From: Macrostomum lignano
Taxonomy: Eukaryota
Direction of reading: 5' to 3'
DNA length: 64,000 nt
Assembly: GCA_002269645.1 (NCBI GenBank)
Contig: NIVC01000236.1
Coordinates: forward strand, 496,001-560,000
Below are positions 18,001-61,397 of the stretch, one piece after another. The notes beneath the pieces are model-generated. The model ran no database searches. It was given only the letters and a program-made list of their open reading frames with translations, and had not been told where the DNA came from. The position numbers and the translations under genes are program-made. The stretch's first letter is position 1, and each line of letters starts with the position of its first letter.

Positions 18001-21000
18001 CAAACTTGGCGTCGGTGGGGTCCAGGCGCACCACCGGGTCCGTGCCCTCGAAGTACGGCCCAGCCGGGTCCAGGCCGGTGATGCGGCCCAGCGGGGTGCC
18101 CCTCTCCCGCAGGCGGCGGCCAACGTAGCCGGCGATGTGGCCACCCAGGCTGAAGCCGATGACGTGGACATTGTCCAGGTCAACGCCGAAGCGGCTGTGC
18201 AGCCAGCGAAGCATCCGGGCAACAACCGCGCCAACCACCCGAGTGTTGGACGTGGCCTGGTTGTACAGCGTGACGGATCCGCCGGCCCAGCCCACCTGAG
18301 AGGCAGGAAGAGCGGCGCTGTAGAGCTTCCACTGATTGAATACCATTACATATTTGCCTTGAAATCCATTGTCTTCACCACGCGTTAAACCTCTCGATGG
18401 TGTAAACAGACATCAGAATCTTTTAATTCGAGGCATGGATTATTCAACTGACAGCAGCGAATCGCACCTGAATCAAATTGCAGTCCACCCGCTTCAGCAT
18501 AGCCTGCCTGATGCGGTTCATCCAGCCCATGACGCCCTTGCCCAGGAAGCCGTGGATGACCAGCTTGGTCGGCCGCCTGTTGCTAAAGCGGGAGCGCAGC
18601 ACGGATTTGGCGTTTTTGTAGTGCAGCTCGGCCGGGCTGGCCGGATTCCGACGGGTGAACAGCAGGAACTTCGTGCCGATCACTTCTGGCGACTGCGGCA
18701 CGACAACCACGGGGCGGTGCAGCAGGTTGAAGTACTTTCCCTTGATGCTGAAGCAGCCCAGATCTCCGTAGCAGACGCTGGTCTTGACCAGGAACCTTTC
18801 GTCTTCATCGATGTCCTCATCGCCGTAGTCCGGAATGTCAGGCTCGACATACTTGTCCAGGTCGATGCTTAGGGTCGACAGCGGCGCGAACGTCAACAGC
18901 AGCGTCGACAGAAGCAGCAAAGGAAGGCGGCACTTCATCTTGAGCGTTTTGCTGGCGTCTCACTGGGTTTCTTCTATTCATTAGTTCATTATTTATAATG
19001 CGAGCTGGCGCCACTTAGCACCAAAGGGAGAGAGAGAGAACTCAAAAACACCGCGGAGTCCTAGACAACTCAGCTCTGAGCAACAAACTTAGCCATAAAA
19101 TTGCCCCATTAACGCATGAAAGATTGAGCAGATGAGTTGCTCAATTGAGATTGAGTTGACTGACCAAAGCATCTGATTCGTTTAACAAAAGAAGTGTGGT
19201 GCGTGGAAAAGTGAAAAATTTACAAAGTGCATTTCCCCGTACGGCTTGAAACCACCGGTGAGTGTTCGTACTAAACAGTACGCATGGTTACGAAAATAGC
19301 AAATACTAGCAATCTGCCCTGACCCCTTAGCAACTCCCCCATGAGCCTTGACATCTCAGCAACTCCCCCATGAGCCTTGACATCTCAGCAACTCCCCCAT
19401 GAGCCTTGACATCTCAGCAACTCCCCCATGAGCCTTGACATCTCAGCGATTCTCCTATGAGCCTTGACATCTCATTAATTCTTCCCGTGAGCCTTGTAAT
19501 CTTGCAGCAAATTCCAACGTAAATCATTGACATCCCAGAAGGACAACTCATTTTTAGTATTTGAACAGCAGTATACAAACTCTATAGTGGGTGGACTTTG
19601 TGGAAGTGTGCAGGGCGGCATTTTTTGTCAGGGGGAGGCAAGAGTCGCAAATCTAAGATACTGACCTCCTCGACCTCCCCTGAACGGATTCCCATAGCAG
19701 TCAATAAGCGATGATCTAAATGTAGGGGGGGGGGGGGCAGCTGCCCCTGTTCCTCGGTGCCTGTTGCAGTCCAGATCTCTAGCTTTAGGCGTCCCTGCCA
19801 GTAAAATGCAGCTACGTGCGCACGTTTTGTTGTTGCGCCAAAACAGCCCCCATTGAAACTCGATGCGCTTCGGTGAACACCTGCTCTGGTGAACAGCTTC
19901 TTCAAGCATGTTGCTTTAGCTTATTATCATATTAGCAGCCTCAGACCCCGGGCCTGTCTGCCTATTGTCCTGGCGAGACGGTTTTTATGACCCAGAGCTG
20001 CTTCAAACTTGGAGAGGGGGTCGCACGAGAGCATTGACGTTGCTGTTTACCACTATGGCCGCCCCGTCTTCAGGACTATTTTTGCCGTGCAGTGTTTTTG
20101 TTTAAATGTCGCCTTCAATAGGTTAAATAGATTAAATAGCTCGTAGATTCAAAACATTAAAAATGTATGCCGAAAAACATCTTATAACGTGTATCATAAT
20201 ACTTGTAGTAGGATACTACCAGTTATGCAATTAAGCAAGTTAAAAAGCAAATTTGCAGCATTTTGACAATAACCATGATTTGATGCACATAATATTAAAT
20301 TAACAAGGCCCATTTAGTAGCACTGCAAAAGTAACAAATATATTTTTATTTTATATTTGATTTGATAAACTTGAGTGAGAAAAAGCTCTTGTCAATTTTT
20401 TTAAGTTTTAGACCCTATGAAATATGTTAAATTCTTTTTTCAAAGGAAAAATATTATTTTCTAATTATAGGCTAGCCACCCAAATTCTAACTGATGACTT
20501 GCTACATGTACCTCCCTGTGCCTCCAAACTTAACAAAATTTCCCAGTTTAGGTTTACTACTTTGTCTTCTATTTAATCATAGGCATTATTTGTTTTTTAT
20601 CATTATCTAAATAATCTAATGCAACAAATACATTGTTATGGTAATAGTCTTTGAAAATTAATAAATAATATTATAAATTCTAGCTTTCTTTACACATGGG
20701 TAAAACAGCTCTACTACTAATTTTGCATACAAGGTCCCAGATAGTCTAATATTGTGTATGGCATTCATCAAATATTTGGCAAGGTTTTTTGGCATGTTCT
20801 AAGTAGTAGAATTATGTGTAACTTTTTTGTTGGCATGCCACAACTATCAGAGCTATGCAGAGGGCCAAAGAAGGTATTTTATTGTTGCAATTCCAAAAAT
20901 GTTTTTTTTATTAAAAAATGATTTGATAAAATGGTTTTTTATAGTTGCAACCATGAAATTTGTCCCATTGGTCTATTAGCACACACTAAGTGGATTTGAT

Positions 21001-23093
21001 CCAACCTTCTGGCATGCACTGTGTAAGGCAATAAAAATTCTCACATGCATATTATATACTCTGGACTATGGGCCTTAATTACTTTTATCACAGATAGAAC
21101 ATCTAGGCCTATTTAACTAGTCTTTAAAAAATAAAATAGGAGCAAATTTAATTTGCAAATGCTTGCTTTAAAATATAAAATAGTCAGTTTAACTGGTGCA
21201 TGTCTAAGGTGGCCATACACTAAGGTAGCCACAATATAGGCATTGCTTTAAATCAGCTTTTGCAAAGAGAAATAACTTTGTTTTAACTTCTTTAAATTAT
21301 ATTTGGCTTATTCTAGCTTCTAGCTAGGGTATAAAGAGGAGTCAAAAGACCATTTTGATGTCTAACTTTGACTATAGGCCTAATGAATAATTATAGGCCT
21401 AATTGTAAATAATATAGTATTGGTTATTCCAGTGTTGGGCACTTCCGTTACCGAGTAACTTGCAAATGGTAACGCAAGTTACTTTTTCGTAAAGCGTTCC
21501 TTACGCAAGTTACTTTTTTATTTTAGTAACGGAATAACGGTAAGTTACTCAAATTTCAGAAGTCCGTTACAGTTACTTTGCAACAATCGCAATATTTAAA
21601 TTTAAAACTGAAATGCTTAGCTATTACGCCGGTTGTCACATGTTTTTGCATTTTTCATTCCTAAATTCAAAACTAAGTGAATAGTATCATATGGTATTGC
21701 GCTTAATTAATGAAGGAATACTTGAAACATGTTTTACTTTGTTAATTTCGGTAAAATATTTTCGCCTTTCATTTTCGTTACTAAAAATTTTCAAGTTTGA
21801 TTCAAACAAACAACCAAAGAAAGAAATTCATCTGTAGCCTCCACAAGTCCCTCCACTGGCACTGCAGTACACTACACCATTTTATACAGTTCTATTTACT
21901 TTACTCTATTGAATTATTGATATTCGTTCATTTTATCATTTATAATTTTAATTATTGATTGCCATTGCCCATTGGTCCTTCTATTTGCCTCACATCGTGT
22001 CGCCAATTCCTGTCTCTGTCTGGTAATCGGTTAATCCCAATGCCCAATGGCAAATTTCGGTAACAACAATGTGAAAAAATGTGCAATGTGAAAAAAGCAG
22101 AAAATTTTGTTAATAACATGGGTAACGGAAGTGAGTAACGGACAGTAACTTAAAAGTTACCTGGTTTTTGTCTAAAGTTACTAGGCTAACGTAAGTTACT
22201 TATTAAAAATTGGTAACTTAAGTTACAGTAACGCAAGTTACTTTTTTTGAGTAACTTGCCCAACACTGGGTTATTCAAAAGCTAGGCCTATCCAAAACTA
22301 GATAGTTTGGCAAATAAGATATAGATTCAGAGATGAAGATAAGAGGAATTGATAAGAGAGAGAGCTTCTGTTTCTATACCCTCCTCTCAGCCTTCCCTCT
22401 TACTTCCCTCCCCTTCCCTCTTCCCTCAACATTGGTCTGTGCCCACCTTGGTCTGTCACTGTTTAACCAAGCATAGGCCTATAGCTAGAAATTTTCTTTG
22501 AGGCCACTAGAAATTATCTTTAGGGTGAGAGAAGATATATACTTAAAAAGCAGCCTTAAATTTTTTTGGGGGGGGGGAGTTACATCCCCTTTCCCCTCCC
22601 TACACCTCTGAGTTTAAACTTTTGGAACTTTTTATACTAGTTGAGATAGGCAACTTATTTCATAGAATAGGCCTAAAATGATATATGTATTAACTTTAGA
22701 ACTTTTTCTAGAAATGAAAAACTAGAAACATAATAAAATACAAACTAATAAATTATAAAAATGGTAGGCCTAGGCCCAAGCGGCCTAGGTTTAAAACAAA
22801 TAACTTACTTATCAATTTTATATAATTTAAAATATTAGTGTTAACTTATAATGTACACATCAATACTGCACTGGTATTGCTGGAAACCGTCAGCGAAAGT
22901 TATGCGTTAGAATTAAGTCTCTTCAGTCAAAGGATTTTCATGTATGCAATCCCAACCCAACGTCCTATTGTTTAGTAAAATTTACTTGTAAGTTGTAAGT
23001 TTCAGATTTACCTTTTCGAGCTTCCTCGATTTTTTCACGTGCTTTCTTCTCTGCTTGGAGAAGCTGTTGGATTCCACCAGTTTGAGTGTTCAT
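15046..23093 (-). CDS. ATP6V1G: V-type H+-ATPase V1 subunit G, 119 aa, 2 exons
   Basis: Exon 1 23093-23012 (82 nt, MNTQTGGIQQLLQAEKKAREKIEEARK+G|gtaaat) joins in phase 1 to exon 2 15323-15046 (tccgcag|GC AAG CAG; KQRRLKQAKQEAAAEIE...FDVQPRLHENF). Intron is 15324-23011. Confidence 0.88.
16109..16780. repeat. 20-bp minisatellite, ~30 copies
   Basis: Unit gacacccagctgacactatt, immediately 3' of the lipase stop codon. Confidence 0.96.
16840..18938 (-). CDS. Secreted pancreatic-lipase-family lipase/phospholipase with C-terminal PLAT-like domain, 509 aa
   Basis: Exons 18938-18468, 18295-17945, 17547-16840, all phase 0, GT-AG. Signal peptide, CYGDLGCF, IHGF, GFSLG (Ser), LDPAGP (Asp), VDAIHT, GHVDFFVNGG, ACDH (His). 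Confidence 0.95.
18991..18997 (-). promoter_or_regulatory. Candidate TATA box of the lipase gene
   Basis: TATAAAT on the minus strand about 53 nt upstream of the ATG; position is plausible but not proven. Confidence 0.45.
19327..19500. repeat. 29-bp minisatellite, ~6 degenerating copies
   Basis: Unit caactcccccatgagccttgacatctcag. Confidence 0.92.
21430..22268. mobile_element. Non-autonomous hAT-type DNA transposon (MITE), 839 bp
   Basis: 12-bp TIR CAGTGTTGGGCA / TGCCCAACACTG; 8-bp TSD ggttattc at 21422-21429 and 22269-22276; many subterminal gtaac/gttac motifs; no ORF. Confidence 0.92.
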
Positions 23094-25924: not shown

Positions 25925-28900
25925 CTAGGAGTCAGTGCTGGGGCTGTGCGTGGACTCCAGAGTGTTAATAAACACCTGAGTGGCGTCCTGAAGCTCCTTG
26001 CCGGCCTCCTGGTACCACTGCTTGAACGAGTCCTCGCAGATGATTGCGTTATCAAGGTAGGCGAAGAAGAGGTCGTTTATCAACTCTGCAGTGCATTTAG
26101 AAGGAATGCGCCGTTGAAACTACTGAAGCACAGTGAGTAGAAAGGTCAGAGCATTGCTACCAGCAAAGCAAAACTCACCAAGTGAAAGGCCTGCACTCTT
26201 TATGGTGTCGCAGGTGGCGCTGAGAACCCACTGCTGTTGCTGCTCATGGGTCTCGATGTGCCGCATAAGGACTGGCTTAACCAGCAGGAACAGCGGCTTG
26301 TTCAGCTTCTTGCTCTCTGCAAAGTGTGAGAATTCAAGTCACAACTGACCTGCCATAAAGATGCCCCATCACTGCAAATGCACATCACCGACTGCCCACT
26401 CACGAGTGCAGCCGCGGCAGACGCTGCGCACGAGAACCCGGATGAACTCCCGAGACTCCATCTGCTTCTTGTCCACCTCCTTCTCTATGAGGGCGATCAG
26501 CTCCTCGGACAGCAGGTCCTTCGCCGAGGCGTCGCCGTCTGCGTTGCCGATTTTCTGCTCGATCCGCTCGCCGACGACGTCCAGGGCGATGGGCGATGGC
26601 GACAGCGTCGTCTCATGCAGAGTGAACTCCAGCTTGTTGGCTGCAACGAAGTCCGCCGCGTCCGCCTGCGGCAGCTCCAGCAGGCTGTGCCACGCCATCC
26701 CTGCCTCCCGGAACGCCGCGCCCACCCGGTCGTGGCCGAGCCGCCCGCTGGCCAGGTGCAGCGCCCGCGACACCACCTCGCCCCGCAGAGGTCGCCGACT
26801 CGAGTCTCGCAGGTCGGCGGGGATCCTCAGCACCAGCTGCTGCACGCAGGACAGGTAGGAGGCCGCCTTCTGCACAAAGGAGGAGAAAATCTCTCCCAGG
26901 TAGCTGGACAAAAGCGGGAAGTCCGACAGGAAGTCGTCCGCCATCTCCATGATGGGTGAGAAGCTGCGGGGGAGCGGATGATGGGTGGGAGTCTGCAATC
27001 TACTGCAATCAATTCACAACCCAGGGCCCAGAGCCGCTGGTCCTCTCGGGTTGCTGGCAGCTGGGCCAAGTTGGGCCTCCCAGGCTGCTGGCAGCTGGGC
27101 CTCCCAGGCTCCTGGCAGCTGGGCCTCCCAGGCTGCTGGCAGCTGGGCCTCCCAGGCTCCTGGCAGCTGGGCCTCCCAGGCTGCTGGCAGAAGGGCCTCC
27201 CAGGCTGCTGGCAGCTGGGCCTCGCAGGCTCCTGACAGCTGGGCCTTCCAGGCTCCTGACAGCTGGGCCTCCTAGGCTGCTGACAGCTGGGATCGCGTCG
27301 AGCTTCAGACAGCAAAAACTTCGTCAGCCGGGGGCCTCACCGGGTCAGACGGTAATTCCAAAATTCATCCTGCTGACGCATCGCGGTGAGCAGCTTCATC
27401 ACCTTGCCCAGACTCACCCCTCAATAAGATCTTTCGAGCTGAGCAGCTCGCTGTGCAGCAACTCGAAGAGCAGCTGGCCGCCCCTCTCCCGAAGCTCTTT
27501 GCTGTTTTCATTCAGCAGGTGCTCCGCGTTCACCTCCACGAAGGCGCTGATTTCTGGGTGACGCGAGATTTCAATGAAGTTGGATTTGGTGTCCTGAATG
27601 GAAGAAGGTGAGGGAGAGGATGCGGTGCTTCAGATTCTTCAGACACATTCATGCAAAGCAAGAGCTTACTTCTAGCGAGCACAGGGAGCCGAGCCACTCC
27701 ATCATTATGTTTTTGCTCTTCCGCTCCAGAACGTCCCGCGGTATCGGCGGCGGCTCAACGGACCGTGGCGACTCAACGGCCCGCGCCGGCAGCTCCTGGC
27801 TGGACTGAGAGCGCGGCATCTTGCCGGAGGCCGCCAACGCTGCCACAGCGGGTTGCTGCAGCTGCTGCGGATCCAGGTGCGGCGAGGCCTCCCGACTGGT
27901 GCCACGACTGGCGCTGGACTCTCGCGAGTTCTTCTGACTGCCCAGCCTAGCGGAGGAGCGAGTTTGTGTTTAACAAATTCTAAACATTTCTGAGGTCCAG
28001 GACAGGAAAACTAATTGAGGACGCCAACTAATATAATCCAACCAACTAATTTAAAGTGAGGCTTGGATGTCAAAGCTCACATGGGTTGTTGATATCTTAG
28101 GGTAGAAGGTTTGGCTTCCAGAGCTGGTGCTGGTGCAAGAAATTGTTCTTTTCTTTCTTGCCCCCCCAACTGGGGGGCGTAGATGGCTAGTCTAACCATA
28201 TAATATTCTCACCTCGGCGTGCCACGGCCTCCGTCATCCTTGCCGCCGGGCCTTGCCTTGGCCACAAACGACGGTCGAGAGGGGCCCAGCCGAGTCTGTG
28301 ACTGGCCCTGCTCCTGGCTGCTGCCGATGACCATCTTGCGAGCGTCCATCTTCTGTGCCTTGCGAGTCGTTGTTACTGGGGTCCACTCGCTGTTGGCCGC
28401 AGGGGTCGGCCCAGCAGGTGGCCGACTGAAGCCGCCCTGCCGGCCACCTCGAGTCTGCTGCTGCTGCATGCCTGCCAGCTGCTGCTTCCGCGACTCATCC
28501 TGCCTGGCTTTCTGCTCCAGCTCCTCCTTCGTCATCGGCCTCTCGTGCAGCCGAATCTCCATCTCGCGCCGCTCCCAGTTCCGCTGCCGCATCTCTACGA
28601 TGTCCTGCAGGCGGAACCGAACCTTCGACTCGATCTCCTTGCTGTTGATCAGCTTCTTGATCCGCTCAAAGTACTGGTCGATTCGAGCCTTGGCGTTATT
28701 CTCACTCTCCAGCTTTTTGCCGACTGTCTTCAGCAGCTCGCACAGGCACTCCAGCGACTCCGTGAACATGCTCTTGCTGCTGTGGTCTGACTTCAGCTGC
28801 GATACAATGCACTGATGGATGATGTTTGCCGTCAGGATGTCCTTCATGAACAGCTCGCCGATGAATCTGCAGTGAGGCAGCATTAAATCACACAATACAC

Positions 28901-31900
28901 AATAAAGGACCCCATTTTATTAACCCTGCTTCTAACAGAAACTTACCTGATGTTCCCGTAATATTGGTCCTTTGCTTTCTTCATCTGCTCGTCCCTCTCC
29001 TCTTCCAGCGCCTTCTTCTTGTCTTCCTTCTCTTCTGCGTCGATCTTCTCTTGCCACTGCGCCCCCTTCTGCTCCATCTGCTCCTTCAGCGGAGTCTCGA
29101 ACATTTCCTGGCATTTCTTCAGCAGCAGAGACCGGAAACCGATGAACTGTTTGTTCTCCTGAGACTGCTCGGGAAAGTTCACCTTGAGCTGCAGGTATGA
29201 AAATGGAAAACATTAGCAATTAAGCTTACGAGCTTACAAAACGCCTCAGTGTTTGCATAATATTTGTGACTATCGCTTACAAAGGCCAGCCGCTTGCAGA
29301 TCTCAGCGAACACGGATGAGTAGGACTTCTCACGAGTGGCCTGCAGACAGAAAATGAGCGCATATTTAGCCAGGTGGGTGCAAGAGCAACTGCAGATTAG
29401 TTGAAATGAATTTTATTTATGGCGTAATCAGACATAAACTGTTTTCTGCATTGCATATAAGTCAGGGATAACGGTCATCATAGGAGAAGTAGGTACCAGT
29501 CTACTCTCTCAATACAAGACAGTTATTACCTTGTCAAAGATGATGTCAACGCAGGCATTGAGACCTTGGATGCTGCCGATATCGCAGGTTGTGGTCAGCT
29601 GAGAAAAGCAGGACTCAAAGTTCTGCGGAGCAATCTTGTTCAGGATGGACCGAATGTTCCGCTCGATCTCCACCTTCTTGAGCTGCTCCTGGTCGTCAGG
29701 CTTCTTCTGCAGGAATCCGGGCACATAGGCACTGTCGCTCTTGTGCAGGTCGACCTTATCCTTCCGCACTTCAATCACAAGCTGCGGCTTGGGCGCCGGT
29801 TTCGGCGGGCCGCCGCCGCCACCACCGCGGCCTCCACTGCCACGATGAGATCCGTAGATGGACTTCCCTTTGTCCTTCGCGACGTAGTTCGGCTGCACCA
29901 CGTATGAAGGCGTGAAATCGAAGCCGCGAACGGTTCGAGGCGGCTGCTGCTGCTGAAAAAGGTATCAAAAGTTTGAAAATGTGAATCTCAGTCGTAGAAC
30001 TGATGAAAAGAAACCAATGCAAAAGAATGAATGGTGACTCATTATTGCTGAAATTTGACGTCAAGCAATGCAAAAATTGCAATTATCTGACGGTAATTCC
30101 AACAGATCATCATTGATTTTATCTTTATAATAATAATTAATAATAAATGACTACACCTGTCCGAATGGGCAGATGTGCAAACAAAAGCTCAGCCGGAATC
30201 GGGATTCGAACCCCCGACCTTCGAGTCGTGAATTCGACGCCTAATAAGGTATCACTTTGGACCTTAATAAACGATATATACACATATCGAAAAACACTGC
30301 AGCACTTACGGAGTCGCTGCGGGGCAGCAGCTCAGGAATGTCTCCCGGTAGCTCGTTGGGCCGCTGGTTGCTGAGATCAGTAAACTGCAGGCTCAGCAGG
30401 AATCCCCGGTCGTACTTCAGCTTCTTTTCAAGCGTTGTCTTGTCAGACTCGCCCGGCTCTGGCTTGAACTCGTACTTGCCGCTTGCCGGTGGCTGAATGA
30501 GCGGCGGCGGCTGCTGCGTCCTGCGCTCCGGCCCAGCCGAGCCGCGTCCGGCATCGACAGACGCCTTGCGCGACGATGGGGCCACTGCGGGCGACTGACG
30601 ACTGCCGTCGGTTGCGTCCCCGTTGACTGGCGGCGACGCCACTGGGGACTTCTGCGCCAGCGCGGTCGGAACAGGCGAGTCCGCGGCGGGCGATTCGGCA
30701 GCGGAGGACTCCGACTTCAGAGCCGGAGCTGTTGCGCCTTCTTTCTTTGCCTCAGCGTCGGGCGCCGGCATCGGAGCAGCCTCCGACACCTCTGGTGAGG
30801 GCGAAGGCGTCGGCGGCTTGGCTGGTGGAGGCAAAGGGTCGACGCTGATCGACTCGGGCTGGGCAGCAAGAGCGGGCGCTGCTGCTGAAGCCTTGGCCTC
30901 CGCTGCGTCGGAGGGGGCGGCTGGGTGCGGCTCGACAGTAGCGGGTGGGGCAGCAGGTGTCGTGGATGTCGGCTGTTGGGCTGCTGCGGTCGCTGGCTTA
31001 GCGGTGGCCCGCAGCTTGAGGAGGTCCTTCTGAACCGTCTGGCCATCGGCCGGCGGCTTCTCGATTGGCAGACCGCGACTGGGCCGATGCGCTGGCCCGC
31101 TTAGCTGCGGCGGTGGCGACGGCTGGTGAATGCCGGCGGCTGCGGAACCGGCGGCGCTAGTTGAAGTCGCTGGTTTCTCAACGTGCACCTCCTCTTTCGT
31201 GTCCGGATTCACAATGGCCAGCCGCTTTCTTTCTCTTATTGGGGCCGCAGCCTCCTGTTGCTGCTGGCCAGCTTGCTGCTGCTGCTGTGGCGCAGGCTGG
31301 TGCTGCTCAGGGCCGGGCCCGCCGTGCTGCATGAATGGCTGATGAGGCGCGGGGGCGGGTCCGGACGGGTGGAACTGAGCCCTGGAGTGCAGCTGACCAG
31401 TCTGAGGCCGAGTGCCGCTAGCATAGGCGCCAGGCACGAACTGCTGAGGATATGCCGGATTTGGCTGCTGATGATGCGGCGGCGGCGGCTGCTGCTGCAT
31501 CGCCGGAATGCCGTAGGTTTGCGGGTTGGAGCCGGGGTAGTTGGCCATGGCGTTCCACGGCTGCATTGGCGGCTGTGTGGACGGGGTGAGTGTGGTTCAA
31601 TAGAATTTCAGCGGTTTGAGCACGGCGGCAGCAGTAGAAATTATTAAAATTTGAAGCACAATATGAAGCAATTTTTTCTTTAACTTCAATAATTTTATAC
31701 CAAGTCCTCAAACTATTAAGAAACTCAAAGAAACTTAAGACAATTAAAATTATTCGAAATAAACAGTTATAAAATATAATAATTAACAGGCACTAAAATC
31801 GAGCTCATAAAACGAACAAAACAGCCGAGCGGCAGAAAAAGCACCGAAACTGGAACGGCCGGTTCTCACTTTTGCAATCAGCGGAGCGGCCATTGTGAAC

Positions 31901-34562
31901 ACCTGGAACTGTGGCTTTAAGCAGATTAAGAATATGTGACAGCATGGGAAAGATAGGGAGTATTCATACTAGTGTTTGCACACTTCAGAAACTTGCACCG
32001 ACAATAGGTATAAAGAACCAACTTGGGCCTACTGTTTCTTAAAAAAACATTTTGGGTGCTGGTTTTGTGCGAAAAAAAACAGTGGAGATAGGCTTCTTTC
32101 CTACACAAAACGGCGATAGCTAATGCAGCCCTAAAACAGTTCCTCGTGCTTCTAATGATTTGTCCTCGCTGATATACACAACTCCAACAGTCTGTTTTTA
32201 ACTCACATAGCCTGGCGGAACTTGCGGGTGCTGCATGGGCATCATTGGCTGAACAGGCTGCTGCACATACGGCGCCATGTACTGCTGCTGCATCGAGCTG
32301 GACGGAAACTGGCCTGGCATGTTGCCAGCTGGCCAGCCAGGCTGAAGAGAGCCGGCTCCCTGCTGCTGGTAGGCGGCATTTGGGTTCTGGCCATAGATCA
32401 CCTGGGACTGCGGCTGTCCCTGTGAATACCGATAGTTCTGAGCCTGCACGTGAAAGTGGCAAAATGCTGTGCTGCAACCTCCAAGTTCTCCACAGCAGAG
32501 TTGATGCTGTTACCACAATTATAACCACAACTCATCAGCCATGGGTAATGTAAGTATTGTATGAAAAAAGTACTACAAAAATTTGGTTGCTTACCAAGTG
32601 CGCACGATTTCCCTCTTGAAATTCCGTTTGATAAGGACCTAAATGAATAAAATATATCAAGTTTGTAAAATTATGAAAATCAATATAGAAAGAAATGGAA
32701 TCTCAATATCTTACCTTGGATATAAGGGCTGTTTGGAGAGTTAGTTAATTTTGGCAGTTAAGGAAAATAAAGAACTTTAGAAAAAATAGTCACATTTATA
32801 TGCTAGCTTTTTAATTTTAAATTAAGTTAACTAATCTATAAGCTATTAACCTAAAAACTAAATTATCTTACAGTATACTTGTTTAAGTAAAGCTAATTCA
32901 ATTATCTCCTAGCTTGTGTTTTATATATAGCTACTTAGATTATACATTTGTTTTTGTAACATTTTCAGTAGTCTCATATGCCTAATTGCCAAAGAGAAAC
33001 AATATTAATTGTTTAAATAAATATTGCTTTTATAGACCATGAGCTTTAAAATTGCCTTTTATTTATGAGATATTCATTAGGCAAGCAAAACTTGAAAAAA
33101 AGAATAATTTCATGGCTAATAATAAAATAATAATAATAATAATAATAATAATTGTTTATTATACCTGCCCTAAGAGATATGCAACCAATAGCTTAGTAGC
33201 AACTATTATGTAGCACATCTAAAGGGTATATACATAGCTATTTAGTTCAAGGACTAGGAAGTTGCCATATATACCTTTATTTATCTTGGCTAATGTTGGT
33301 ACCCATGTTATAGGGGTCTCCCTAAAACACGCCCTGCACCACTACACATTCAAACAAATTAGACTATAACTGAAGACACTTCAAAATGTGTTTTATGTTA
33401 AGCTTTAAAGTTTTTTTATTAAATTTAGTTTTTTACTTTGAAATATAAAATTCGGTGAATAATAAGTGATATTAATAATAATATTAATAAAATAATAATA
33501 ATATAATTTAATAATGAAAATGAGAATATAAAAAATAATAATATTTATAATAATAATTAAAGATACTTATTCCATTACTCTTACAACAAATAGTTTTCCT
33601 TGCAATCAAATACTGCATTGACAAAAATTTTATAATGTATAGCAGTTTGGGGCAGTGCAATGCATGTTTTAGGAAGACCCATGTTATAGCTAGGCAAATT
33701 GAAACAATATATAGTTAAATGTCTTGCTTAAGGACACAAATTGTTACAAATAAGTCAGAAATCCAAGCCTCAACCTTTTAGTTATAAATCTAGCATTCTA
33801 ACTATAAGGCTATAACTTTTAGCCTTGTAACTAAATACTTGGAAAAATTGTTTTATTAATATATTGGTAAAGATCAAATTATTAATTTCAAATGATATAA
33901 AAATAATACTAAACCAAATTAATCAATAAAAAAAATAGTTGATTTAATTTTTAATGTGGTAAGGAATTGTTATTGTTTTATGTGTCATTAAAATATTGAT
34001 ACAAAACAATAGAAATTTTTAGTGATAATGCCAATGGTTTTTGTCTCTAACTTTAATTAGCTTACTTAATATAGTTATTAATTATTTATATTAATAAAAT
34101 CTATTTCTCCATAACTATAAAAATAGCCACTTTACCTTTTAAATCTAATGCATTTTATAAGTATATACAATGACTATAGTATAAAATTTATACAATATTT
34201 ATATACTATACGATATAATATAACCCTTTATTATTAATATCCCAAATCCCAAAATTTTATTTTTAATTTGATAATATTATGCTAAGTAATTCTACAAAAA
34301 TTAAATATATAAAAATCTACGAGTAATAAAGAAATCCTTCTGTCTATTTAAAATTGAAGTTCTTGTTTTGGAAATTTTCAAACCTTAGCTTACATAATTA
34401 CAAAGTACAAATATAGCTAAGATTTAGCTGGCCAATTCAAAGACCTTTGAATTAGATACTGGTAGGGTCGGCATGAAGCTACTTTAGCAGCATATAATAT
34501 TTTTTAAAGATTTTTAAGAAAGGATACGGTTGTTGGTAGTCTTGTTGATGCCGGTTATTCAT
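25925..34562 (-). CDS. EIF4G: Eukaryotic translation initiation factor 4G, 14 coding exons, 1427 aa
   Basis: Exons 34562-34528, 32728-32715, 32638-32595, 32443-32207, 31572-30310, 29952-29530, 29340-29281, 29188-28947, 28866-28213, 27946-27670, 27593-27418, 26963-26404, 26316-26179, 26085-25925; phases are consistent and total 4284 nt. PABP-binding-like RERKRLAIVNPD, eIF4E motif YDRGFLL, DFTPSY, MIF4G (RSILNK, NIRFIGELF, RVRFRLQD), MA3, and W2 (ICEDSFKQWY). The three most 5' exons are less certain than the rest. Confidence 0.92.
27053..27291. repeat. 24-bp minisatellite in an eIF4G intron, ~10 copies
   Basis: Unit gctgggcctcccaggct(c/g)ctggca inside intron 26964-27417. Confidence 0.93.
30122..30260 (-). 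mobile_element. tRNA-derived SINE-like fragment in an eIF4G intron
   Basis: Minus strand carries a B box GGTTCGAATCC in a tRNA-like context and ends in a (TAT)n-like tail; no complete cloverleaf. Confidence 0.5.
32729..34527 (-). other. Candidate U12-type (minor spliceosome) GT-AG intron of eIF4G
   Basis: Donor GTATCCTTTC at 34527; branch site TTCCTTAAC at 32765-32757, 28 nt before the acceptor; joins two in-phase exons. Confidence 0.75.
33117..33152. repeat. (AAT)n microsatellite
   Basis: Direct. Confidence 0.85.
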
Positions 34563-34696
34563 TTCCAGAAATATTGACGCTCTTTAAAATGACTCTCTAC
34601 AATTAGAAAACAGGTAATGCAAAATGAAAGCATGCATATCAAGTTAAGTAATTAATACAGAATTTAAGAGAAAAGGAAAAAAATGAATAATCTTAC

Positions 34697-34778
34697 CCAT
34701 AAGAGAGTACAAACAACTTTTCGGAGGAAGCAAAAATTTGTATCCTCGTGCGGTTGCACAATATAGGCAAAACTTCTA
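34697..34778 (-). other. Probable 5' UTR exon of eIF4G (5' boundary uncertain)
   Basis: Ends cttatgg|gtaag; a 100-nt intron leads to acceptor ttgtag|ag at 34596; the arrangement is conserved in the paralogous copy at 60.8-61.0 kb. Confidence 0.6.
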
Positions 34779-37700: not shown

Positions 37701-40700
37701 GATTCTGATCGACTACCCGCCGAACATAAGAGGTGGGGTTCTCTACAATGGTTGTCAATTATGTCGACACAAGTTGTTGCTGCGTGTAGCGATTTGTAGC
37801 GATTTTTATTTTCATTCCGTTTTCGAACAGCTGAAAGGTACATCTGTGGAGATGAACATTTTATTATTAGAGAGATAATGAGTGAACGCTTTGTCTGTAT
37901 TTTTTGCTGTCTTCTTTCTATTCCAATAGGATTCTAGCACCATGCAGATTTCAAGATATTAAATTATGAGTTCCAAGTTATTTAAGCATGATTACATAGT
38001 CTGTTACAATGCTATAACCTTCATGATGCCCCAAAATTATTGATCCTAGGTAAATCTGATGTCAGTTAAGCAGACCAATGAATTTAAAGTAAATTTAAAG
38101 TCAATCAGACCTGATTATTTGGTGTTAGTAAGTGAAATCTGATTAATCTGGTGATCTTAGACTAGAATTGCTAGTCATAAAAAAATTTAAGTGATGGTCA
38201 ATAAAAAGATGTTCAAAGTAATTTTTACAAAATTTACCTCAACTTATTCAGTATGAAATAAGCATAATAACTATCATTAAAAATAACTAAAGCCTAATTC
38301 ATTACAAATTATACATTAAATGGCAATAAAATTATATTAGGTTGTCCCTGCTGCAAAGCCAAAAAAATGCTTCTTTATAGGGTTCTTTGCAGTGCCTTGA
38401 TGAAATATCTAAGCTTTTCATTGTACATGCTCCATACAGTGGGCTTCCGGAGAAAAAAATCATGACAAAAACTAACATTTATGGCATTTAAGAGCCAACA
38501 AAGAGTACCATTTAGTAAAGAAAAAAAATGCTTCAAGCTTGATAGGTGTGTAATAACATATTTCAATTCTAAAAACTGGCAATTATTCATTTTGATGCAA
38601 CAGACTACTGGAGAAAATCACTTTGTGCTCTCTAACTATTAAAAAGTATTTTTATATTGTTATAGAATGTTATACAATAAGTATTATATTAGGCTTTTTC
38701 AATAAAAAGCATCGATTTTATGCTAAATTATTTTCTAAAATGTAAAAGTGAATAATCCAATTGGATACATCAATCTAGATTAGTTTTTAACATATTCTCA
38801 TATGAGCATATAGGTGGGATGTCATAATCAATGTTTACTACCAAAACGAAGAATATTCGAACTACAGTAGGGTTTATACAAATAAAGCATTACTCATGCA
38901 TGCATTTAATGCAAATTAACTCAAAACTTTCACCATCTGTATTAATTCCTACATTTTTAGCCCTTATTTGTAAATTATATAGAATTTTTTTCACACGTGT
39001 TCAACGTGGTTGAAATTCCGCCAAAAAAATTATCGCTGAAAAGGACATATTTTGTCTTTTAGAGGAGCGAAAAAGACTAATTTTACTTAGATTATAGTAA
39101 AATTATTTATAATTCACAGTTTAATGCAAGATTTAACCGGCCATACTCATTAGAAAACAGATACAATTAGGTATTACAAAGTTTGAATGGTGTAAACTCG
39201 CGATGCCCTCGTTTTGACTTTGCCCCCTACTATCAAACTTTTTCTCGGCCTTTTAAACCTTTTTGTAGTTGTTCCGCTTACTGTCTACGTCATCTGCTTA
39301 TTTGTAAAATTAATAATTTCATTTGAATCCGCGAACTTAAGCTACTGCGCCTCATTATATTTTCAAAAACGAAACTTGAACATAAAACAATAAAAACCTA
39401 TAAAAGTATTATATTTCCGTTGCACTTGCAGCATAACATTACGCTTGTTTATTGATGTCGCATACATGCCCATGATAAGGAGGGCGCAATTTTCTATCTT
39501 CGTCTCCGTCTCTATTAGTTCTAGCAGCCCAATAAAAAAATTGTTTTTTTTCGCCAAGATTACTGCATGGATTTTAGATTAAGGTCACTGCGCGGACCAA
39601 GAAGCAACGCTGAAATGCAGTTACCAAGTCAATCAACCAACTTAATCATATGTATCAATATGCATCAATCATATAAGCTGCATGGTATGCAAATCATCTG
39701 CCAGTAATGTTCTTTAATACAGTCTCAGCTAGCAGCGAAGCGGCAAGAACCCAGTGATCTCCTGCTGAAGGCTCTGATCATCATCAGCGCTATCTGTCAG
39801 TCGACGATTGTTCAAATTTGAGGCCAAAAGCATGCAAATACATGTACATATGCTTCCTGGGAATTCAATAATGTAATTGCGCCCGTAAATTCAACGGTGC
39901 ATGTACAGACATCTTGCAGTAGTCCTCTCGTAGTCCCCAGCAGTGTCCTTTTAATTGGCTATGACTTCGCGATGGACAGTATAAAGATCGAGACACATCA
40001 TGCAGGCTATATTTTTATCGAAGTAAAACCAGTCAGTGCCCTTGTCGAAAATTCGATTTCGTAAGAATCTGGTTTGTTGAGCCAGTTCGCACGGATTGGT
40101 GGTGACGGGTTTGGTCAGTCTGCTCAGTTTGCTCAGTTTGATTCCTGTTTCAAATTCTCCAGCTGCTTGTCTCGCTGTCTTCTCTTAGACATTTGGTAGG
40201 ACCTACTCGCAAGGACTACTTAAGTAGTCCTTGCCTACTCGTAGCTGCTTGCCACGTACATCTTTGCTGACCATCTGACAGGAGTGGCGGGCCAAGAGCG
40301 CTCAGTTTTATTGCCGCGCCCTGAGGCCCGAAAAGCTCCGATGAAAGTGTTGTGTCGTGTAACCTGACAGACCAACTTAATGATAGATAATATTTTACGA
40401 ATATTTCTACTATAACGTAAATGCTACCTATATTATTATTATTGTCTATTACTTATACTGCCATTTTAAGTAGAGTAGTTGATAAATTATCTGTATAATG
40501 TATTATTAATCACGTGATATCTCTAGTTCTTGAATTTATCGATCGTGCAGTTTTTCTAGTGTAGTTAAAATATCGATCATGTAGTTTTTCTTAAATAACA
40601 AAAATATAAATAAAGCAACTGTGCGCACCTAGCACTTTACTTTTCAACTCAACTGGAAAACTTCAAGCCTTGGCTACACAACACAAAGGCTTAAGAAATT

Positions 40701-40774
40701 AGCCGAACCCGAGTCAATGGTATGCAGAAGTTTATGATCAAAGACCACTTGGAAGCTATCGTTTCTATAGAATG

Positions 40775-41450
40775 ATCATCAACACGCTGAAGATCGAGGT
40801 GCTGACTGTGCCGGCCGACATTCCAGACCTTTTGACGTGCCGCGGCGCAGACGCGCAGACGACCAAGCTCGCACGCTGCCAGCGGTTCACCTACATCAGC
40901 GGTCTGGTGCCCCACGTGGAAGAGGACCCCCGCCAGCGCAGAGGACTTGCCTGGGCGGCCTTTCGTTCGATCCGAGCCGTCCTCCAGTCCGAAAGCGCTG
41001 CCTGACCGCCAGAGGGCTCGGCTGTGGCAGGCGGTGGTCGAAACCGTCCTGCTATACAACGCCGAGACGTGGACGCTGACGGCTACGCTAGAGCGGCAGC
41101 TGGACTCGGCGCACTCAGGGCTGCTCCGTGCGGCCTTTCGAGCTGACGAGAGCGTCGGGACCGAGGCCCTGTACGATCGGGCCAAGCTGCAGCGCCCGTC
41201 CATCATCCTGCGCCGGCGGCGACTTCAACTGGCGGGCCACGTGATCCGGGCCGAGGGCTACTGCCCCCAACCTGTTCGGGACGTCCTGCTGCTCACCTTG
41301 CAGGGTCCGTTCAGGGGTTTCAGGCCTGAACCCGTCGATACGTGGACTGCCTGCTGTGCGATGCTGGGGCGCCCGACACTGCCAACGGAGCGGACTTTGT
41401 TCGCTCCCAGGCTCTGCGGCGCGCCATCTGAACCGCCCTGTTCTAACTGT
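40775..41450 (+). mobile_element. RTE-clade LINE, 3' RT fragment, frameshifted
   Basis: Translates to FTYISG, RRGLAWAAF, VVETVLLYNAETWTLT and RRRRLQLAGHVIR, typical RTE reverse-transcriptase C-terminal motifs. Confidence 0.88.
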
Positions 41451-41959
41451 GACCTTTGCTTGCGGGGCCGCGTATTTTGTTGTTATTTTTGTTGTTATAG
41501 AGTTTTTGAAATTTAGTACTCTCGTATATGAAAAATCTTTTTTTTCATATCCATTGTGCATCACCAACAGAAGTCAACCTTTAATTTATAACTTAAAACG
41601 CTTTCGTACCATCTACCATTTGCCGTTTACACATAGCCAAACTACATTCATTCTATGTTCACAAGTTTCCACTCCGAAAGCAGTGGTCAAGATTTCTCAG
41701 ATCGCAGCTAGAAGTAAAATGAGTGCAATGATCCTGCAGGCTGCAGTTCAAGAGTAGGACTCAAATTAGCGCGGGTAAAACAAACTCAAGTTCCTATGCA
41801 GAACTGAAAAGCTGCTTCTCAATTAGCCGCTCAGGTTGTATGGACTTGGAAAGGTTTTGAGAGTTTTTAATTGTAATTTTGCATGAGCGCTGGCGTTAAC
41901 CGTTGGCTCTAAGTCTGATGTCGGCAGCGGTGCACTGCAGACAGGTATGAATTTGCATG

Positions 41960-43807
41960 TACACCAGTCACCATGCTCATGTGAATTCATATGCCTTTTG
42001 TGTGCCTACGTACGCCATCATCGGCAGGCAGAGGAACACTGGGATTGACGTCCTGCGAGTCTGGCCACCACCGACAGCCGGCCAGCAGGTGCTGCAGGTC
42101 GCTGACGGCTTTCTCAGCGACACGAGATCTAGCGGAGTGCTCCAAGGACATATCGAGGACATCGGCAGGGTACTGCGTAGCACGCCAGCGTGTTCAGTGG
42201 CATCGGCTACTTCACCGGGCCGCTTCATCCACATCCACCTCACCGACAGCGCCCACCCGGTCTGCCATGCACCGTCGAAGGTGCCGATCCACCTGGCAGG
42301 CGCGGTAGAAAAGGAACTTCAGCTGCTGGAACAGCTCGGGATCATCAGGCCCGTCAACGCAGCGGCACCGTGGGTCGCGCAGATGGTCGTCGTGCCCAAA
42401 AAGAGCCGGGTGAGGTGCGCATCACATAGGATCCCCGCAATGTCAACCGCTACGTCATCCGCGAGCGGCACCAGATTCCGACTTTGGAGGAGGCGACCCG
42501 GGACATGGCCAGCAACGATAGCGGCGACGCAAGGGGGCCGGTGGGATACGGTCGCTCTGCGCGCTGCGAGAGGAGCTGTCTGCGGTGGACGGAGTTCTCC
42601 TTTGGCACCAGCGAATCGTCGTGCCAGCTGGTCTCGGCAGCAGATGCTCGAATTGGCCCAACCAAGGACATCAGTGCTCGCAGAAGATGATCGCCAGGCT
42701 CAGTGTGGTGGCCGAGGATGGCAACTTCGCACACACCAGCCGTTCGTGCTACGCCTCTGCAGCCGACGCCGATCCCCGTGGGCGCCTGGCTGTTGATCGG
42801 CGCCGACTTCGTAGGACCCATCAACAACAACATCGCTTCAGGATCCCGCAGGAGCTCGTGATAGACAATGGACCGCCCTTCTCTTCCAAGGAGTTCGGCC
42901 GGTTCTTGGCGAGCTACGGGACCAAGCACCGCCTCATCACGCCCTAACTACCCATCGGCCAACGGCATGACCGAGCGACTCAACTCCTCCATCAAAAAAT
43001 TCGTGCGAGCAGCCCTCGAGAAGCGGCGGAACTGAAGGGCCGCTCTGGACGAGTGGCTGCTGGCCTACAGGAACACGCCGCACACGGCCACCGCGCGCGC
43101 ACCAGCCGTTGGCCGGCGGCAAAACGACGTCATCCCCGCTGCCCGGCCATCCTAGCGAGTCCGCATCAACAAGCAGCGGCTAAGAGAAGCGGACACCGGC
43201 GCCAAGGCGGCACAACGTCCGGGTCGGTGCTACGATGGCGGGTCGGTGCCAGCAAGACGCAGACGTCATTCGAGAGCGGTGCCCGGACAGTCCAGCGAGC
43301 AACTCGCTGCTGCTACGACGGGATGACACGACCTGCTGGTGGCACTGCACGGCGGTCAAGGTCGTCAGTCCCAACTTGGCCGACGCTGGCGCCAGGCCGC
43401 GGACCGCTACACCGAGAGCTCCAGATGAGGCGAGCCGAGACCAACCCGCCTCCTATTCAAATATCTTATTTTCTCAATATTTTAATCTCCGCATTATCGC
43501 TGAGCCTTTCGAGTTTTGAAATTTTTTGTTCTTTTTAATCGGGTTTCTTCTCTCTCAGTCTCTATTTTAAGGGGGAGAGATTTAGTGTGCGTACGCACGG
43601 CATGTCGGCCCAAGTGTACGCTGATTGGCTGGGGAGTGGGTGGGTGTCGCCACCCCAATTCTAACTTTACCATATATAAATGCGTGCCCAGCGCAGCGAG
43701 AGTGTAAGAGTTTGGTGGCTTCACCGACTGGCGCTGTCTCAATGTCCTATGATGACATTGTCGTTCATGTACCTCTCGAGCTCGTTCGCTCAGATAGCTA
43801 TAGTACA
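41960..43807 (+). mobile_element. Degenerate Ty3/gypsy LTR retrotransposon remnant with probable 3' LTR
   Basis: RT-like (AVEKELQLLEQLGII..PWVAQMVVVPKK, RHQIPTLEE) and integrase-like (PQELVIDNGPPFSSKEF, LLAYRNTPH) fragments. Polypurine tract AAGGGGGAGAGA at 43569-43580 is followed by a ~225-bp segment with ATTGG and TATATAAA that ends in ACA at 43807. Confidence 0.8.
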
Positions 43808-61086: not shown

Positions 61087-61397
61087 GTATCCTTTCTAAC
61101 TAGGGCCTAACTTTCTATTATTAACTGCTGCGAAATTAACTTCATGTTAAACTGTTAACCCTTACAGTTTGTAATTGATTTTTCAATAATCTTTTTTGCT
61201 TTTATTCTACTACTATTAATAATACTAAAGATTATTTATTTGGTTAACCAACAAGCAACATATTAATAGTTAATAACTTTGAACAAACTGACTTACTTTA
61301 ATACCTACTAATTGATTTAGGATGGTTCTTAGTCTTAGAAATATATTTCTAGAATTATTTGGTTAGCTATTAGTATTAGTTAGATTATAATAATGAA

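Follow-up and report, generated by a model that had tools for sequence, protein, structure and literature searches.

The window, by which we mean the whole 64-kb stretch of DNA that was analysed, is identical in sequence to contig NIVC01000236.1 and carries on its minus strand BOX15_Mlig013413g2, the eIF4G gene of Macrostomum lignano. Upon computed splicing, the gene model comprises 14 exons with 4,284 nt and 1,427 codons, closed by one terminal stop, and its 1,427-aa product is the same as GenBank PAA87383.1 at every residue. When PAA87383.1 was threaded onto the window DNA, only one solution was found, with the junctions of the 14-exon model. The GenBank annotation of M. lignano is not ab initio; it was built from RNA-seq, through StringTie/TACO assemblies and Trinity transcripts, with ORFs called by TransDecoder (PMC5730564). 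The match to a transcript-derived CDS, together with the unique threading, is indirect evidence that the junctions of exon 1, the following 14-nt exon and the 44-nt exon are used in the mature mRNA. The cluster of PAA87383.1 holds six annotated proteins with the common N-terminus MNNRHQQDYQQPPYIQGPYQ; three UniRef-only cluster entries (A0A1I8..., provenance unchecked) have the same N-terminus as PAA87383.1. The window also contains a V-ATPase G gene, with its first exon at 23093.

The identity of the gene as eIF4G is supported, at the level of sequence, by Pfam matches to MIF4G and MA3 and by the eIF4E-binding motif YDRGFLL. The MIF4G domain (HEAT-1; PF02854) is matched at residues 629-868 with E = 2.5e-27, and MA3 at residues 1099-1174 with 25.2 bits against a Pfam cut-off of 23.2. 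The eIF4E-binding motif, of the form YxxxxL-hydrophobic, lies N-terminal of MIF4G as KKLKYDRGFLLSLQF in exon 5; the human motif is KKRYDREFLLGFQF. Pfam did not detect a W2 domain in the eIF4G product, and in a paralog of the gene the domain stayed below the cut-off; by eye, the C-terminal end of the eIF4G product is W2-region-like. In a word-indexed search, all matches to the MIF4G region were of at most 736 aa and at most 42% identity, and the N-terminal 310 aa returned zero homologs in a search that also missed the window's own 1,427-aa product. M. lignano proteins were recovered by an exhaustive representative search with exon 9. The NAGNAG acceptor of exon 6 would permit an eIF4G variant that is one Q shorter; an exact look-up of the protein collection gave no entry for it.

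The features of the gene, all on the minus strand, are as follows.

34528..34562, minus strand: exon 1, the first coding exon, 35 nt, with the ATG at 34562; encodes MNNRHQQDYQQ plus CC, ends in phase 2 and is part of the PAA87383.1 threading
32729..34527, minus strand: intron 1, 1,799 nt, 24% GC, GT-AG, most probably U12-type
34519..34527, minus strand: U12-type 5′ splice site GTATCCTTT after ACC (ACC/GTATCCTTTC from 34527)
32757..32765, minus strand: U12-type branch motif TTCCTTAAC, 28 nt from the exon; the intervening sequence ends in AG (32730-32729)
32767..32756, minus strand: branch 12-mer TTTTCCTTAACT, enclosing TTCCTTAAC
32740..32746, minus strand: U2-like AACTAAC, a candidate branch site between the U12 branch motif and the acceptor
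32715..32728, minus strand: exon 2, the microexon CCCTTATATCCAAG, 14 nt, followed by GTAAGA; the reading frame depends on it
32639..32714, minus strand: intron 2, 76 nt, GTAAGA...TTTAG, 20% GC, U2-type
32595..32638, minus strand: exon 3, 44 nt, followed by GTAAGC
32444..32594, minus strand: intron 3, 151 nt, GTAAGC...TGCAG, U2-type
32207..32443, minus strand: exon 4, 237 nt
25925..31572, minus strand: exons 5-14, exon 5 with KYDRGFLL; TAG stop at 25927..25925

The first three exons add up to 93 nt (35 + 14 + 44), so exon 4 and all later exons are in frame, and an in-frame TAA lies 24 nt 5′ of the ATG. Exon 2, flanked as AG/CCCTTATATCCAAG/GTAAGA and needed for the annotated protein, is with its 14 nt a microexon under the definition of at most 27 nt. 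It is very probably a real exon and is present in every annotated product seen. The original prediction had described exon 1, the donor, the branch motif with its 28-nt spacing, the 14-nt exon, 76-nt intron and 44-nt exon, and AACTAAC; upon recomputation from the minus strand all of these details were right, and the claim that these exons are in phase with the large eIF4G exons is borne out by the identity of the product with PAA87383.1.

Splice signals of intron 1

We observe that the donor ACC/GTATCCTTTC agrees with the U12 5′ splice site consensus /RTATCCTTT and that the branch sequence TTTTCCTTAACT, near the 3′ end of the intron, agrees with the U12 consensus TTCCTTRAY. Intron 1 is the sole U12-like intron of the gene, the other 12 starting with GTAAG, GTGAG or GTAAT. 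As a U1-type donor ACC/GTATCC is poor, having no G at -1 and none at +5, and every other donor, in the eIF4G gene and its paralog alike, fits U1 better. The last 28 nt of intron 1, tgccaaaattaactaactctccaaacag, are A-rich and without a polypyrimidine tract; several of the gene's U2-type introns (e.g. introns 2, 5 and 10) have T/C-rich 3′ ends. Minor introns show a bias away from phase 0, with which the phase 2 of intron 1 agrees.

The distance between a U12 branch site and its acceptor is usually below about 25 nt. The gap from branch motif to exon reaches 28 nt in intron 1 of eIF4G and 22 nt in the paralogous intron, as against 11-15 nt in five other species. The branch A of TTCCTTAAC lies approximately 29-30 nt from the junction, with the motif just within the -40 search window of MIDB; for this distance an optimum of 11-13 nt is reported, as quoted in PMC6717393. 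Two features of eIF4G intron 1 are unusual, namely this long branch-to-acceptor gap and the adjoining microexon.

Taken singly, the motifs occur at chance level, with the donor 8-mer GTATCCTT found 2 times in the window against 1.47 expected and the branch 8-mer TCCTTAAC found once against 2.1 expected. These whole-window counts, not being significant alone, were dropped as evidence, and a test of the ordered pair took their place. In the 2.76-kb 5′ region the exact motif pair arose in the observed order in 21 of 20,000 first-order Markov simulations, that is with a probability of about 1e-3, a figure that leaves out frame, flanking splice sites and conservation.

Conservation in a paralog and in other animals

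The paralog Mlig006204g2 is divergent, with 56% identity to eIF4G in the part of the MIF4G region that exon 9 encodes; its exon 1 measures 50 nt and ends in phase 2, its donor is ATC/GTATCCTTTT and its branch motif TTTTCCTTAAC. Its U12-type intron is followed by a 20-nt exon at the place of the 14-nt exon, an 82-nt intron and a 47-nt exon. Both U12 motifs are thus exact in two M. lignano paralogs that otherwise defy alignment in both their N-terminal proteins and their introns. Conservation among three near-identical M. lignano copies was set aside as uninformative, their alignable parts being 90-99% identical and the centre replaced.

Among other animals, the first coding intron is in phase 2 and U12-type in Argopecten (scallop; a record marked 'LOW QUALITY PROTEIN', of which the first two exons only were threaded), Anneissia (crinoid), Lytechinus (sea urchin) and the eif4g3 of Garra (fish). 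The first coding intron of Styela (tunicate) is likewise in phase 2 and has the degenerate U12 motifs GTATCTTTT and TTCTTAAC. In the eIF4G of Sycon (sponge) and the eif4g1 of Channa (fish), the first coding intron is U2-type and in phase 0. The exon 3′ of the intron measures 38-70 nt in the other phyla, which places the microexon outside the conserved feature; in Styela, a 17-nt exon 3 lies close by. Since the N-terminal peptides are unalignable between phyla, we base positional orthology on the rank of the intron, its phase and its type. A paper on insect U12 introns leaves eIF4G unmentioned.

Judging from these motifs and their distribution, we consider it highly probable that BOX15_Mlig013413g2 has a true U12-type intron of the GT-AG subtype as its intron 1, that the minor intron of vertebrate EIF4G3 is its ortholog, and that the flatworm intron was inherited from the bilaterian ancestor or an even earlier one. 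The EIF4G3 minor intron would accordingly be old, dating back at least to the bilaterian ancestor, and would have kept a fixed place as the first coding intron, in phase 2. The original prediction of a U12-type first coding intron holds up, with exact GT-AG U12 donor and branch motifs and with position, phase and type conserved, and the comparison of intron positions that it had proposed across metazoan eIF4G genes finds the same phase-2 U12-type first coding intron in molluscs, echinoderms and fish eif4g3.

Consequences of missplicing and alternative explanations

Upon computed skipping of the 14-nt exon the frame shifts and a stop appears at codon 157, in keeping with the frameshift that had been foreseen for the whole gene. 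Retained intron 1 would end translation after 27 codons and retained intron 2 after 26; with such premature stops, any of the three events would abolish full-length eIF4G. It had further been proposed that slow minor splicing of intron 1 limits eIF4G and that regulated skipping of the 14-nt exon serves as a switch of cap-dependent translation, a speculation that we regard as unlikely. Beyond the loss of product, it would fit the persistence of the intron in two flatworm paralogs and several phyla, the U6atac-controlled switch role proposed for minor introns (PMC3728624), and the tissue-dependent cryptic-exon use that MIDB records for the mammalian EIF4G3 minor intron (PMC6717393). However, the six annotated proteins all start with MNNRHQQDYQQPPYIQGPYQ and none of them represents a skipping or retention isoform, the conserved feature does not extend to the microexon, and neutral processes can explain the long retention of minor introns, according to a passage of PMC10639083. 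A wider speculation, which we hold to be doubtful, is that the U12 intron has been kept across flatworms, molluscs, echinoderms, tunicates and vertebrates because it ties the amount of the cap-binding scaffold to minor-spliceosome activity, and that in Macrostomum this step is rendered particularly inefficient, and hence tunable, by the long branch gap together with a 14-nt exon that is out of frame.

A different alternative accepts that the U12-like sequences have been kept, yet has the major spliceosome remove intron 1 through AACTAAC, for example upon loss or reduction of minor splicing. AACTAAC is a good U2-type branch consensus, placed 11 nt before the exon and with its branch A at 12-13 nt from the junction, the distance of the U12 motif from the exon is unusually large, and the degenerate motifs of Styela show drift towards U2-type at the same position. 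We nevertheless consider this alternative improbable, because exact U12 motifs in two otherwise unalignable paralogs are hard to explain without U11/U12 selection, and because the donor lacks the G that U1 prefers at both positions and no polypyrimidine tract precedes the AG. Furthermore, Schistosoma, another flatworm genus, is reported in a passage of PMC10639083 to have kept minor splicing, with both minor introns and minor snRNAs.

That the motifs are chance occurrences on a wrong 5′ gene model, with the mRNA starting elsewhere and the 35-nt and 14-nt exons being artefacts, is scarcely credible: the chance frequency of each 8-mer, the GC content of exons 1-3 (0.43-0.45 vs 0.52-0.67 in the other exons) and the N-terminal 310 aa without homologs in one search would suit it, but the model product is exactly identical to the transcript-derived CDS and to two other annotated copies, its threading is unique, the ordered pair is rare in simulation, a paralog has the same architecture and other animals the same kind of intron, and in the frame of exon 4 no ATG lies between the stop codon upstream and the exon's acceptor.

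Proposed course of splicing

For a genuine U12-type intron 1, we infer that the minor spliceosome is needed, as well as which branch point is used and in what order splicing proceeds. By analogy with the established mechanism of minor introns, the U11/U12 di-snRNP would recognise GTATCCTTT and TTTTCCTTAAC together, after which U4atac/U6atac.U5 would catalyse the joining of exon 1, with its 35 nt, to the acceptor AG at 32729. With only 14 nt, exon 2 falls short of what ordinary exon definition needs; it would thus probably be joined first to exon 3, through intron-defined removal of the 76-nt U2-type intron 2, or alternatively the two exons would be recognised jointly. We also considered a possible in-frame AC acceptor at 32743, 15 nt further upstream, which would add 5 residues and is not used by the annotated protein.

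What makes the arrangement a mechanistic oddity is a U12 acceptor approximately 29 nt from the branch site, in front of an exon that measures only 14 nt. Intron 1 also constitutes indirect evidence for minor splicing in Macrostomum. An Rfam scan of the 64-kb window found no minor snRNA, and a full-text literature search returned no paper naming both Macrostomum lignano and the minor spliceosome. M. lignano, a flatworm model able to regenerate, is accessible to transgenesis, and part of the literature on it reports RNAi knockdown phenotypes; minor splicing could be perturbed there and eIF4G read out.

Comparison with known systems

EIF4G3 is already a listed minor-intron gene, and the flatworm intron is a new member of a known, ancient minor intron. 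The EIF4G3 minor intron is recorded in MIDB at chr1:21089214-21176174 in human and at chr4:137994145-138045342 in mouse (PMC6717393 supplement), and the gene also appears in a U12 gene list (PMC6239176). The MIDB donors of EIF4G3 score 94-95 and the mouse Eif4g3 branch site scores 100 (PMC6717393). In both human and mouse the nine intronic donor bases, GTATCCTTT, and the GT-AG subtype are those of flatworm intron 1, the mouse branch site is identical to the flatworm 12-mer TTTTCCTTAACT, and the intron sits at the extreme 5′ end of the gene, as in the flatworm. The threaded eif4g3 of Garra rufa has its U12 intron, like the flatworm gene, as the first coding intron and in phase 2, with the donor ACA/GTATCCTTT, which is the MIDB donor of human and mouse EIF4G3. 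The N-terminal peptides of flatworm eIF4G and vertebrate EIF4G3 are not alignable, and the likeness in rank and phase is known from the fish ortholog. A placement of the mammalian U12 intron after MNSQPQT proved wrong; in fish, MN(A)QPQ is encoded by exon 4 of the long isoform, and it is an upstream exon, MSLPP..., that precedes the U12 intron of eif4g3. The dimensions differ, with an intron of 1.8 kb in the flatworm, 5.8 kb in Garra and 51-87 kb in mammals, and, for flatworm and Garra respectively, a first coding exon of 35 and 167 nt, a branch motif 28 and 11 nt from the exon and a next exon of 14 and 61 nt.

The switch model of Younis et al. (2013, eLife; PMC3728624), in which unstable U6atac controls minor introns and a single poorly spliced U12 intron amid numerous U2 introns could determine how much product a gene gives, was reportedly established for mammalian genes in cultured cells and applies to the flatworm gene by analogy only. 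In the prospero twintron of Drosophila, U2-type and U12-type signals compete within one intron; the flatworm intron resembles it in the U2-like AACTAAC inside a U12-type intron, near a shared acceptor, but differs in that no in-frame alternative U2-type donor was identified in intron 1. Most of the well-known regulated microexons preserve the frame, their length being divisible by 3, and are neuron-specific, whereas the length of the flatworm exon is not divisible by 3 and, to judge from the annotation, the exon is constitutive. With animal microexons at large (at most 27 nt), the 14-nt exon of the flatworm shares its AG/GT flanks and the requirement for it in the reading frame.

Exon structure of the 5′ end of eIF4G

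On the minus strand, the 5′ end of the eIF4G gene Mlig013413g2 reads exactly as the original prediction had described the region.

Features of the 5′ end of eIF4G (minus strand, from sequence reading)
34562: ATG of exon 1 (35 nt; MNNRHQQDYQQ + CC)
Directly 3′ of exon 1: donor of intron 1, GTATCCTTTC
32765..32757: branch motif TTCCTTAAC, 1.76 kb downstream of the donor
32730-32729: acceptor AG of intron 1, the first AG after the branch motif, closing the 28 nt that separate this motif from the exon
After this acceptor: 14-nt exon CCCTTATATCCAAG, then GTAAGA
3′ of the 14-nt exon, in order: 76-nt intron, 44-nt exon (then GTAAGC), 151-nt intron

Large GC-rich exons follow the 151-nt intron, and the completed model, of 14 exons, totals 4,284 nt; its 1,427 codons end in the only stop. 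The gene is assigned to eIF4G because its product carries a KYDRGFLL eIF4E-binding motif together with MIF4G and MA3 domains. Intron 1 is the sole exception among the 13 introns, the other 12 of which begin GTAAG, GTGAG or GTAAT. An in-frame TAA lies 24 nt 5′ of the ATG; upstream (34596-34700, minus), a GTAAGA (34696) and an acceptor TTGTAG/ whose last base is 34597 may mark a 5′-UTR intron or a spliced-leader acceptor. Within intron 1, an AC dinucleotide at 32743/32742 (minus), 12 nt past the branch motif, would as an acceptor make the exon 29 nt long and likewise keep the frame (…QQPNSPNSPYIQG…); this acceptor is unused in the annotated protein.

Two later introns have features of their own. 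Intron 5 contains a tRNA-like stretch (~30170-30245, minus; …GGTCGGGGGTTCGAATCCCGATTCCGGCTGAGC…), which is probably a piece of a SINE of tRNA origin. Intron 11 (27417-26964, minus) is 65% GC, unlike the others; a 24-nt unit (CCAGCTGCCAGGAGCCTGGGAGGC-like) is repeated there in tandem about ten times (~27060-27310, minus), and the repeats read as an open frame in a different phase.

Transcript support and gene copies

The spliced 1,427-aa model is an exact sequence match to PAA87383.1 (BOX15_Mlig013413g2), and contig NIVC01000236.1 (GCA_002269645.1) is the reverse complement of the window, base for base, over the 14,638 bases compared. Exact-match threading of this protein onto the DNA, with donors allowed to be GT, GC or AT and acceptors AG or AC, gave exactly one splicing solution, with the junctions originally predicted. 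Since the assembly's GenBank annotation was built from RNA-seq (StringTie/TACO assemblies and a de novo Trinity transcriptome, with TransDecoder ORFs; PMC5730564), these junctions are transcript-derived rather than gene-predictor output.

A search of 1.84 billion representative proteins with exon 9 returned matches at 94-95%, from Macrostomum lignano, and the N-terminus of PAA87383.1 recurs in three entries of its cluster that are found only in UniRef (A0A1I8...). Two further genomic copies, g1 and g3, have the structure of the window gene, and intron 1 is 90-99% identical across the three where alignable, with ~1 kb of its centre replaced. By sequence the three copies are recent duplicates, so their agreement carries no weight.

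Four annotated M. lignano eIF4G-like proteins (P0080, P0081, P0225 and P0226; 670-1,048 aa) match the window protein at 94-95% identity across exon 9, one of them being encoded on NIVC01000003.1, which also bears g3. All four lack the N-terminal third (PABP-binding and eIF4E-binding): P0080, P0081 and P0226 begin MRKTDCPYVPG… and P0225 later, at LGSQKNSRE…, while P0081, P0225 and P0226 have an unrelated cysteine-rich C-terminal module fused on. Each is either a truncated duplicate or a chimeric gene model.

Chance expectation and conservation of the U12 motifs

Neither U12 motif is significant alone, with GTATCCTT occurring twice in the window (1.47 expected) and TCCTTAAC once (2.1 expected). 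Both exact motifs in the correct order in the 2.76-kb stretch 5′ of exon 4 were obtained in 21 of 20,000 Markov simulations (~1e-3), a figure for the ordered pair only that leaves out frame, flanking splice sites and conservation. The second exact GTATCCTT of the window (61087-61094, +) has no branch-site-like motif 3′ of it on the same strand to the window end, and is therefore taken as chance.

For nine eIF4G genes, the annotated protein was threaded onto the locus that encodes it, and the results are tabulated below.

First coding exon and intron of eIF4G genes (exon 1 and phase; donor; branch motif and distance to the exon; next exon)
M. lignano Mlig013413g2 (window): 35 nt, phase 2; ACC/GTATCCTTTC; TCCTTAAC, 28 nt; 14 nt
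M. lignano Mlig006204g2 (paralog): 50 nt, phase 2; ATC/GTATCCTTTT; TCCTTAAC, 22 nt; 20 nt
Argopecten (scallop): 77 nt, phase 2; TGT/GTATCCTTTA; TCCTTAAC, 11 nt; 39 nt
Anneissia (crinoid): 83 nt, phase 2; TTC/GTATCCTTTA; TCCTTTAT, 13 nt; 49 nt
Lytechinus (sea urchin): 62 nt, phase 2; ACA/GTATCCTTTT; TCCTTAAC, 15 nt; 70 nt
Styela (tunicate): 65 nt, phase 2; ACT/GTATCTTTTT; TTCTTAAC, 13 nt; 38 nt
Garra rufa eif4g3 (fish, MSLPP... isoform): 167 nt, phase 2; ACA/GTATCCTTTT; TCCTTAAT, 11 nt; 61 nt
Sycon (sponge): 231 nt, phase 0; CCG/GTAAGACAAT; no branch motif; 96 nt
Channa eif4g1 (fish): 69 nt, phase 0; CAG/GTAACACAGG; no branch motif; 87 nt

In Styela, donor and branch motif each carry a single mismatch and are degenerate, and in genes with a U12 first intron the later introns examined are all ordinary GT-AG. 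Phase 0 is under-represented among minor introns, with which the phase 2 of intron 1 agrees. The paralog Mlig006204g2 shares the architecture, with an 82-nt intron and a 47-nt exon coming after its 20-nt exon, yet in the exon-9 segment of the MIF4G region it is only 56% identical to the window gene, and the two N-termini are unalignable. The exon after the U12 intron is 38-70 nt in non-flatworm phyla, and by these sequences the microexon is flatworm-specific. Separately, the third coding exon of the Styela clava eIF4G3-like gene (L010 2967-2984), two exons past its degenerate U12-like intron, is a 17-nt microexon.

Probable splicing mechanism and proposed regulation

The predicted U12 intron and 14-nt microexon are well supported by the exact motifs, the transcript-derived junctions and the conserved position, phase and intron type, and we consider this reading very probably correct. 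The major spliceosome might, with low probability, take part in removing intron 1, as suggested by the unusual branch-to-acceptor distance of the two flatworm genes (28 and 22 nt versus 11-15 nt elsewhere) and by another unusual feature, a U2-like AACTAAC 11 nt before the 14-nt exon; however, two old paralogs both preserve exact U12 motifs, and ACC/GTATCC fits U1 poorly.

For removal by the minor spliceosome, the sequence signals, exon structure and conservation are observed, and the steps follow established minor-intron biology. U11 would base-pair to the donor and U12 to TTTTCCTTAAC, whose T-run would let the pairing extend over the GGAAAA stretch of U12 (as in the human snRNA); U4atac/U6atac.U5 would then complete splicing at the first downstream AG. 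The AT-rich 76-nt intron 2 is probably removed by intron definition, before or in concert with intron 1, because the 14-nt exon is too small for U1 and a 3′ splice-site complex to occupy it simultaneously.

It had further been proposed that minor splicing limits the rate of eIF4G expression and that skipping the microexon acts as an on/off switch. The frameshift arithmetic is correct, with skipping computed to give a stop at codon 157; retention of intron 1 or intron 2 gives stops after 27 and 26 codons, respectively. The annotation contains no skipped or retained isoform, and the fact that a minor intron has been kept for a long time is not by itself evidence of function (PMC10639083). A switch or rate-limiting step is speculative and improbable.

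Other features of the window

15046-23093 (minus): V-ATPase subunit G gene (119 aa), exon 1 at 23093 (MNTQTGGIQQLLQAEKKAREKIEEARK), next coding exon at ~15335-15046
16840-18938 (same strand): pancreatic-lipase-like gene within the ~7.7-kb V-ATPase G intron, either nested or belonging to a transcription unit that is trans-spliced
~16000-16300 (minus): tandem repeat of a ~20-nt unit (GTGTCAATAGTGTCAGCTGG-like), in the stretch from the lipase gene to the next V-ATPase G exon
19346-19462 (+): 29-nt periodic repeat bearing CCTTRAC
46903-48501 (+), 54312-55948 (-) and 40690-43540: by eye, long ORFs resembling P-element/THAP9-type transposases (two diverged copies), plus reverse transcriptase/retroelement fragments

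Relation to the EIF4G3 minor intron

The EIF4G3 minor intron is already known and ancient, and the exon structure is already in GenBank; the flatworm instance is new. It is of value for dating the intron, as indirect evidence that minor splicing occurs in Macrostomum, and for its odd 3′ geometry. A full-text search found no paper naming both Macrostomum lignano and the minor spliceosome. By gene coordinates, the human and mouse EIF4G3 minor introns begin near the gene's 5′ end. In Schistosoma, another flatworm genus, minor introns and minor snRNAs are reported (PMC10639083), and EIF4G3 is among the U12 genes in a paper on Rnpc3-deficient mice (PMC6239176). The Minor Intron DataBase (MIDB; PMC6717393 supplement) lists the EIF4G3 minor intron in human (chr1:21089214-21176174, 86,961 nt) and mouse (chr4:137994145-138045342, 51,198 nt), with donor ACA/GTATCCTTT and branch sites TTATCCTTAACT and TTTTCCTTAACT, respectively. 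EIF4G1 is absent from the MIDB tables, in agreement with the U2-type intron of fish eif4g1. Because the Garra rufa eif4g3 intron has the identical ACA/GTATCCTTT donor, the vertebrate entry can be linked to the phase-2 first coding intron of the invertebrates tabulated with a U12 motif. The window gene itself shares nine intronic donor bases with both human and mouse EIF4G3, and its branch 12-mer is identical to that of mouse, a site with an MIDB score of 100.
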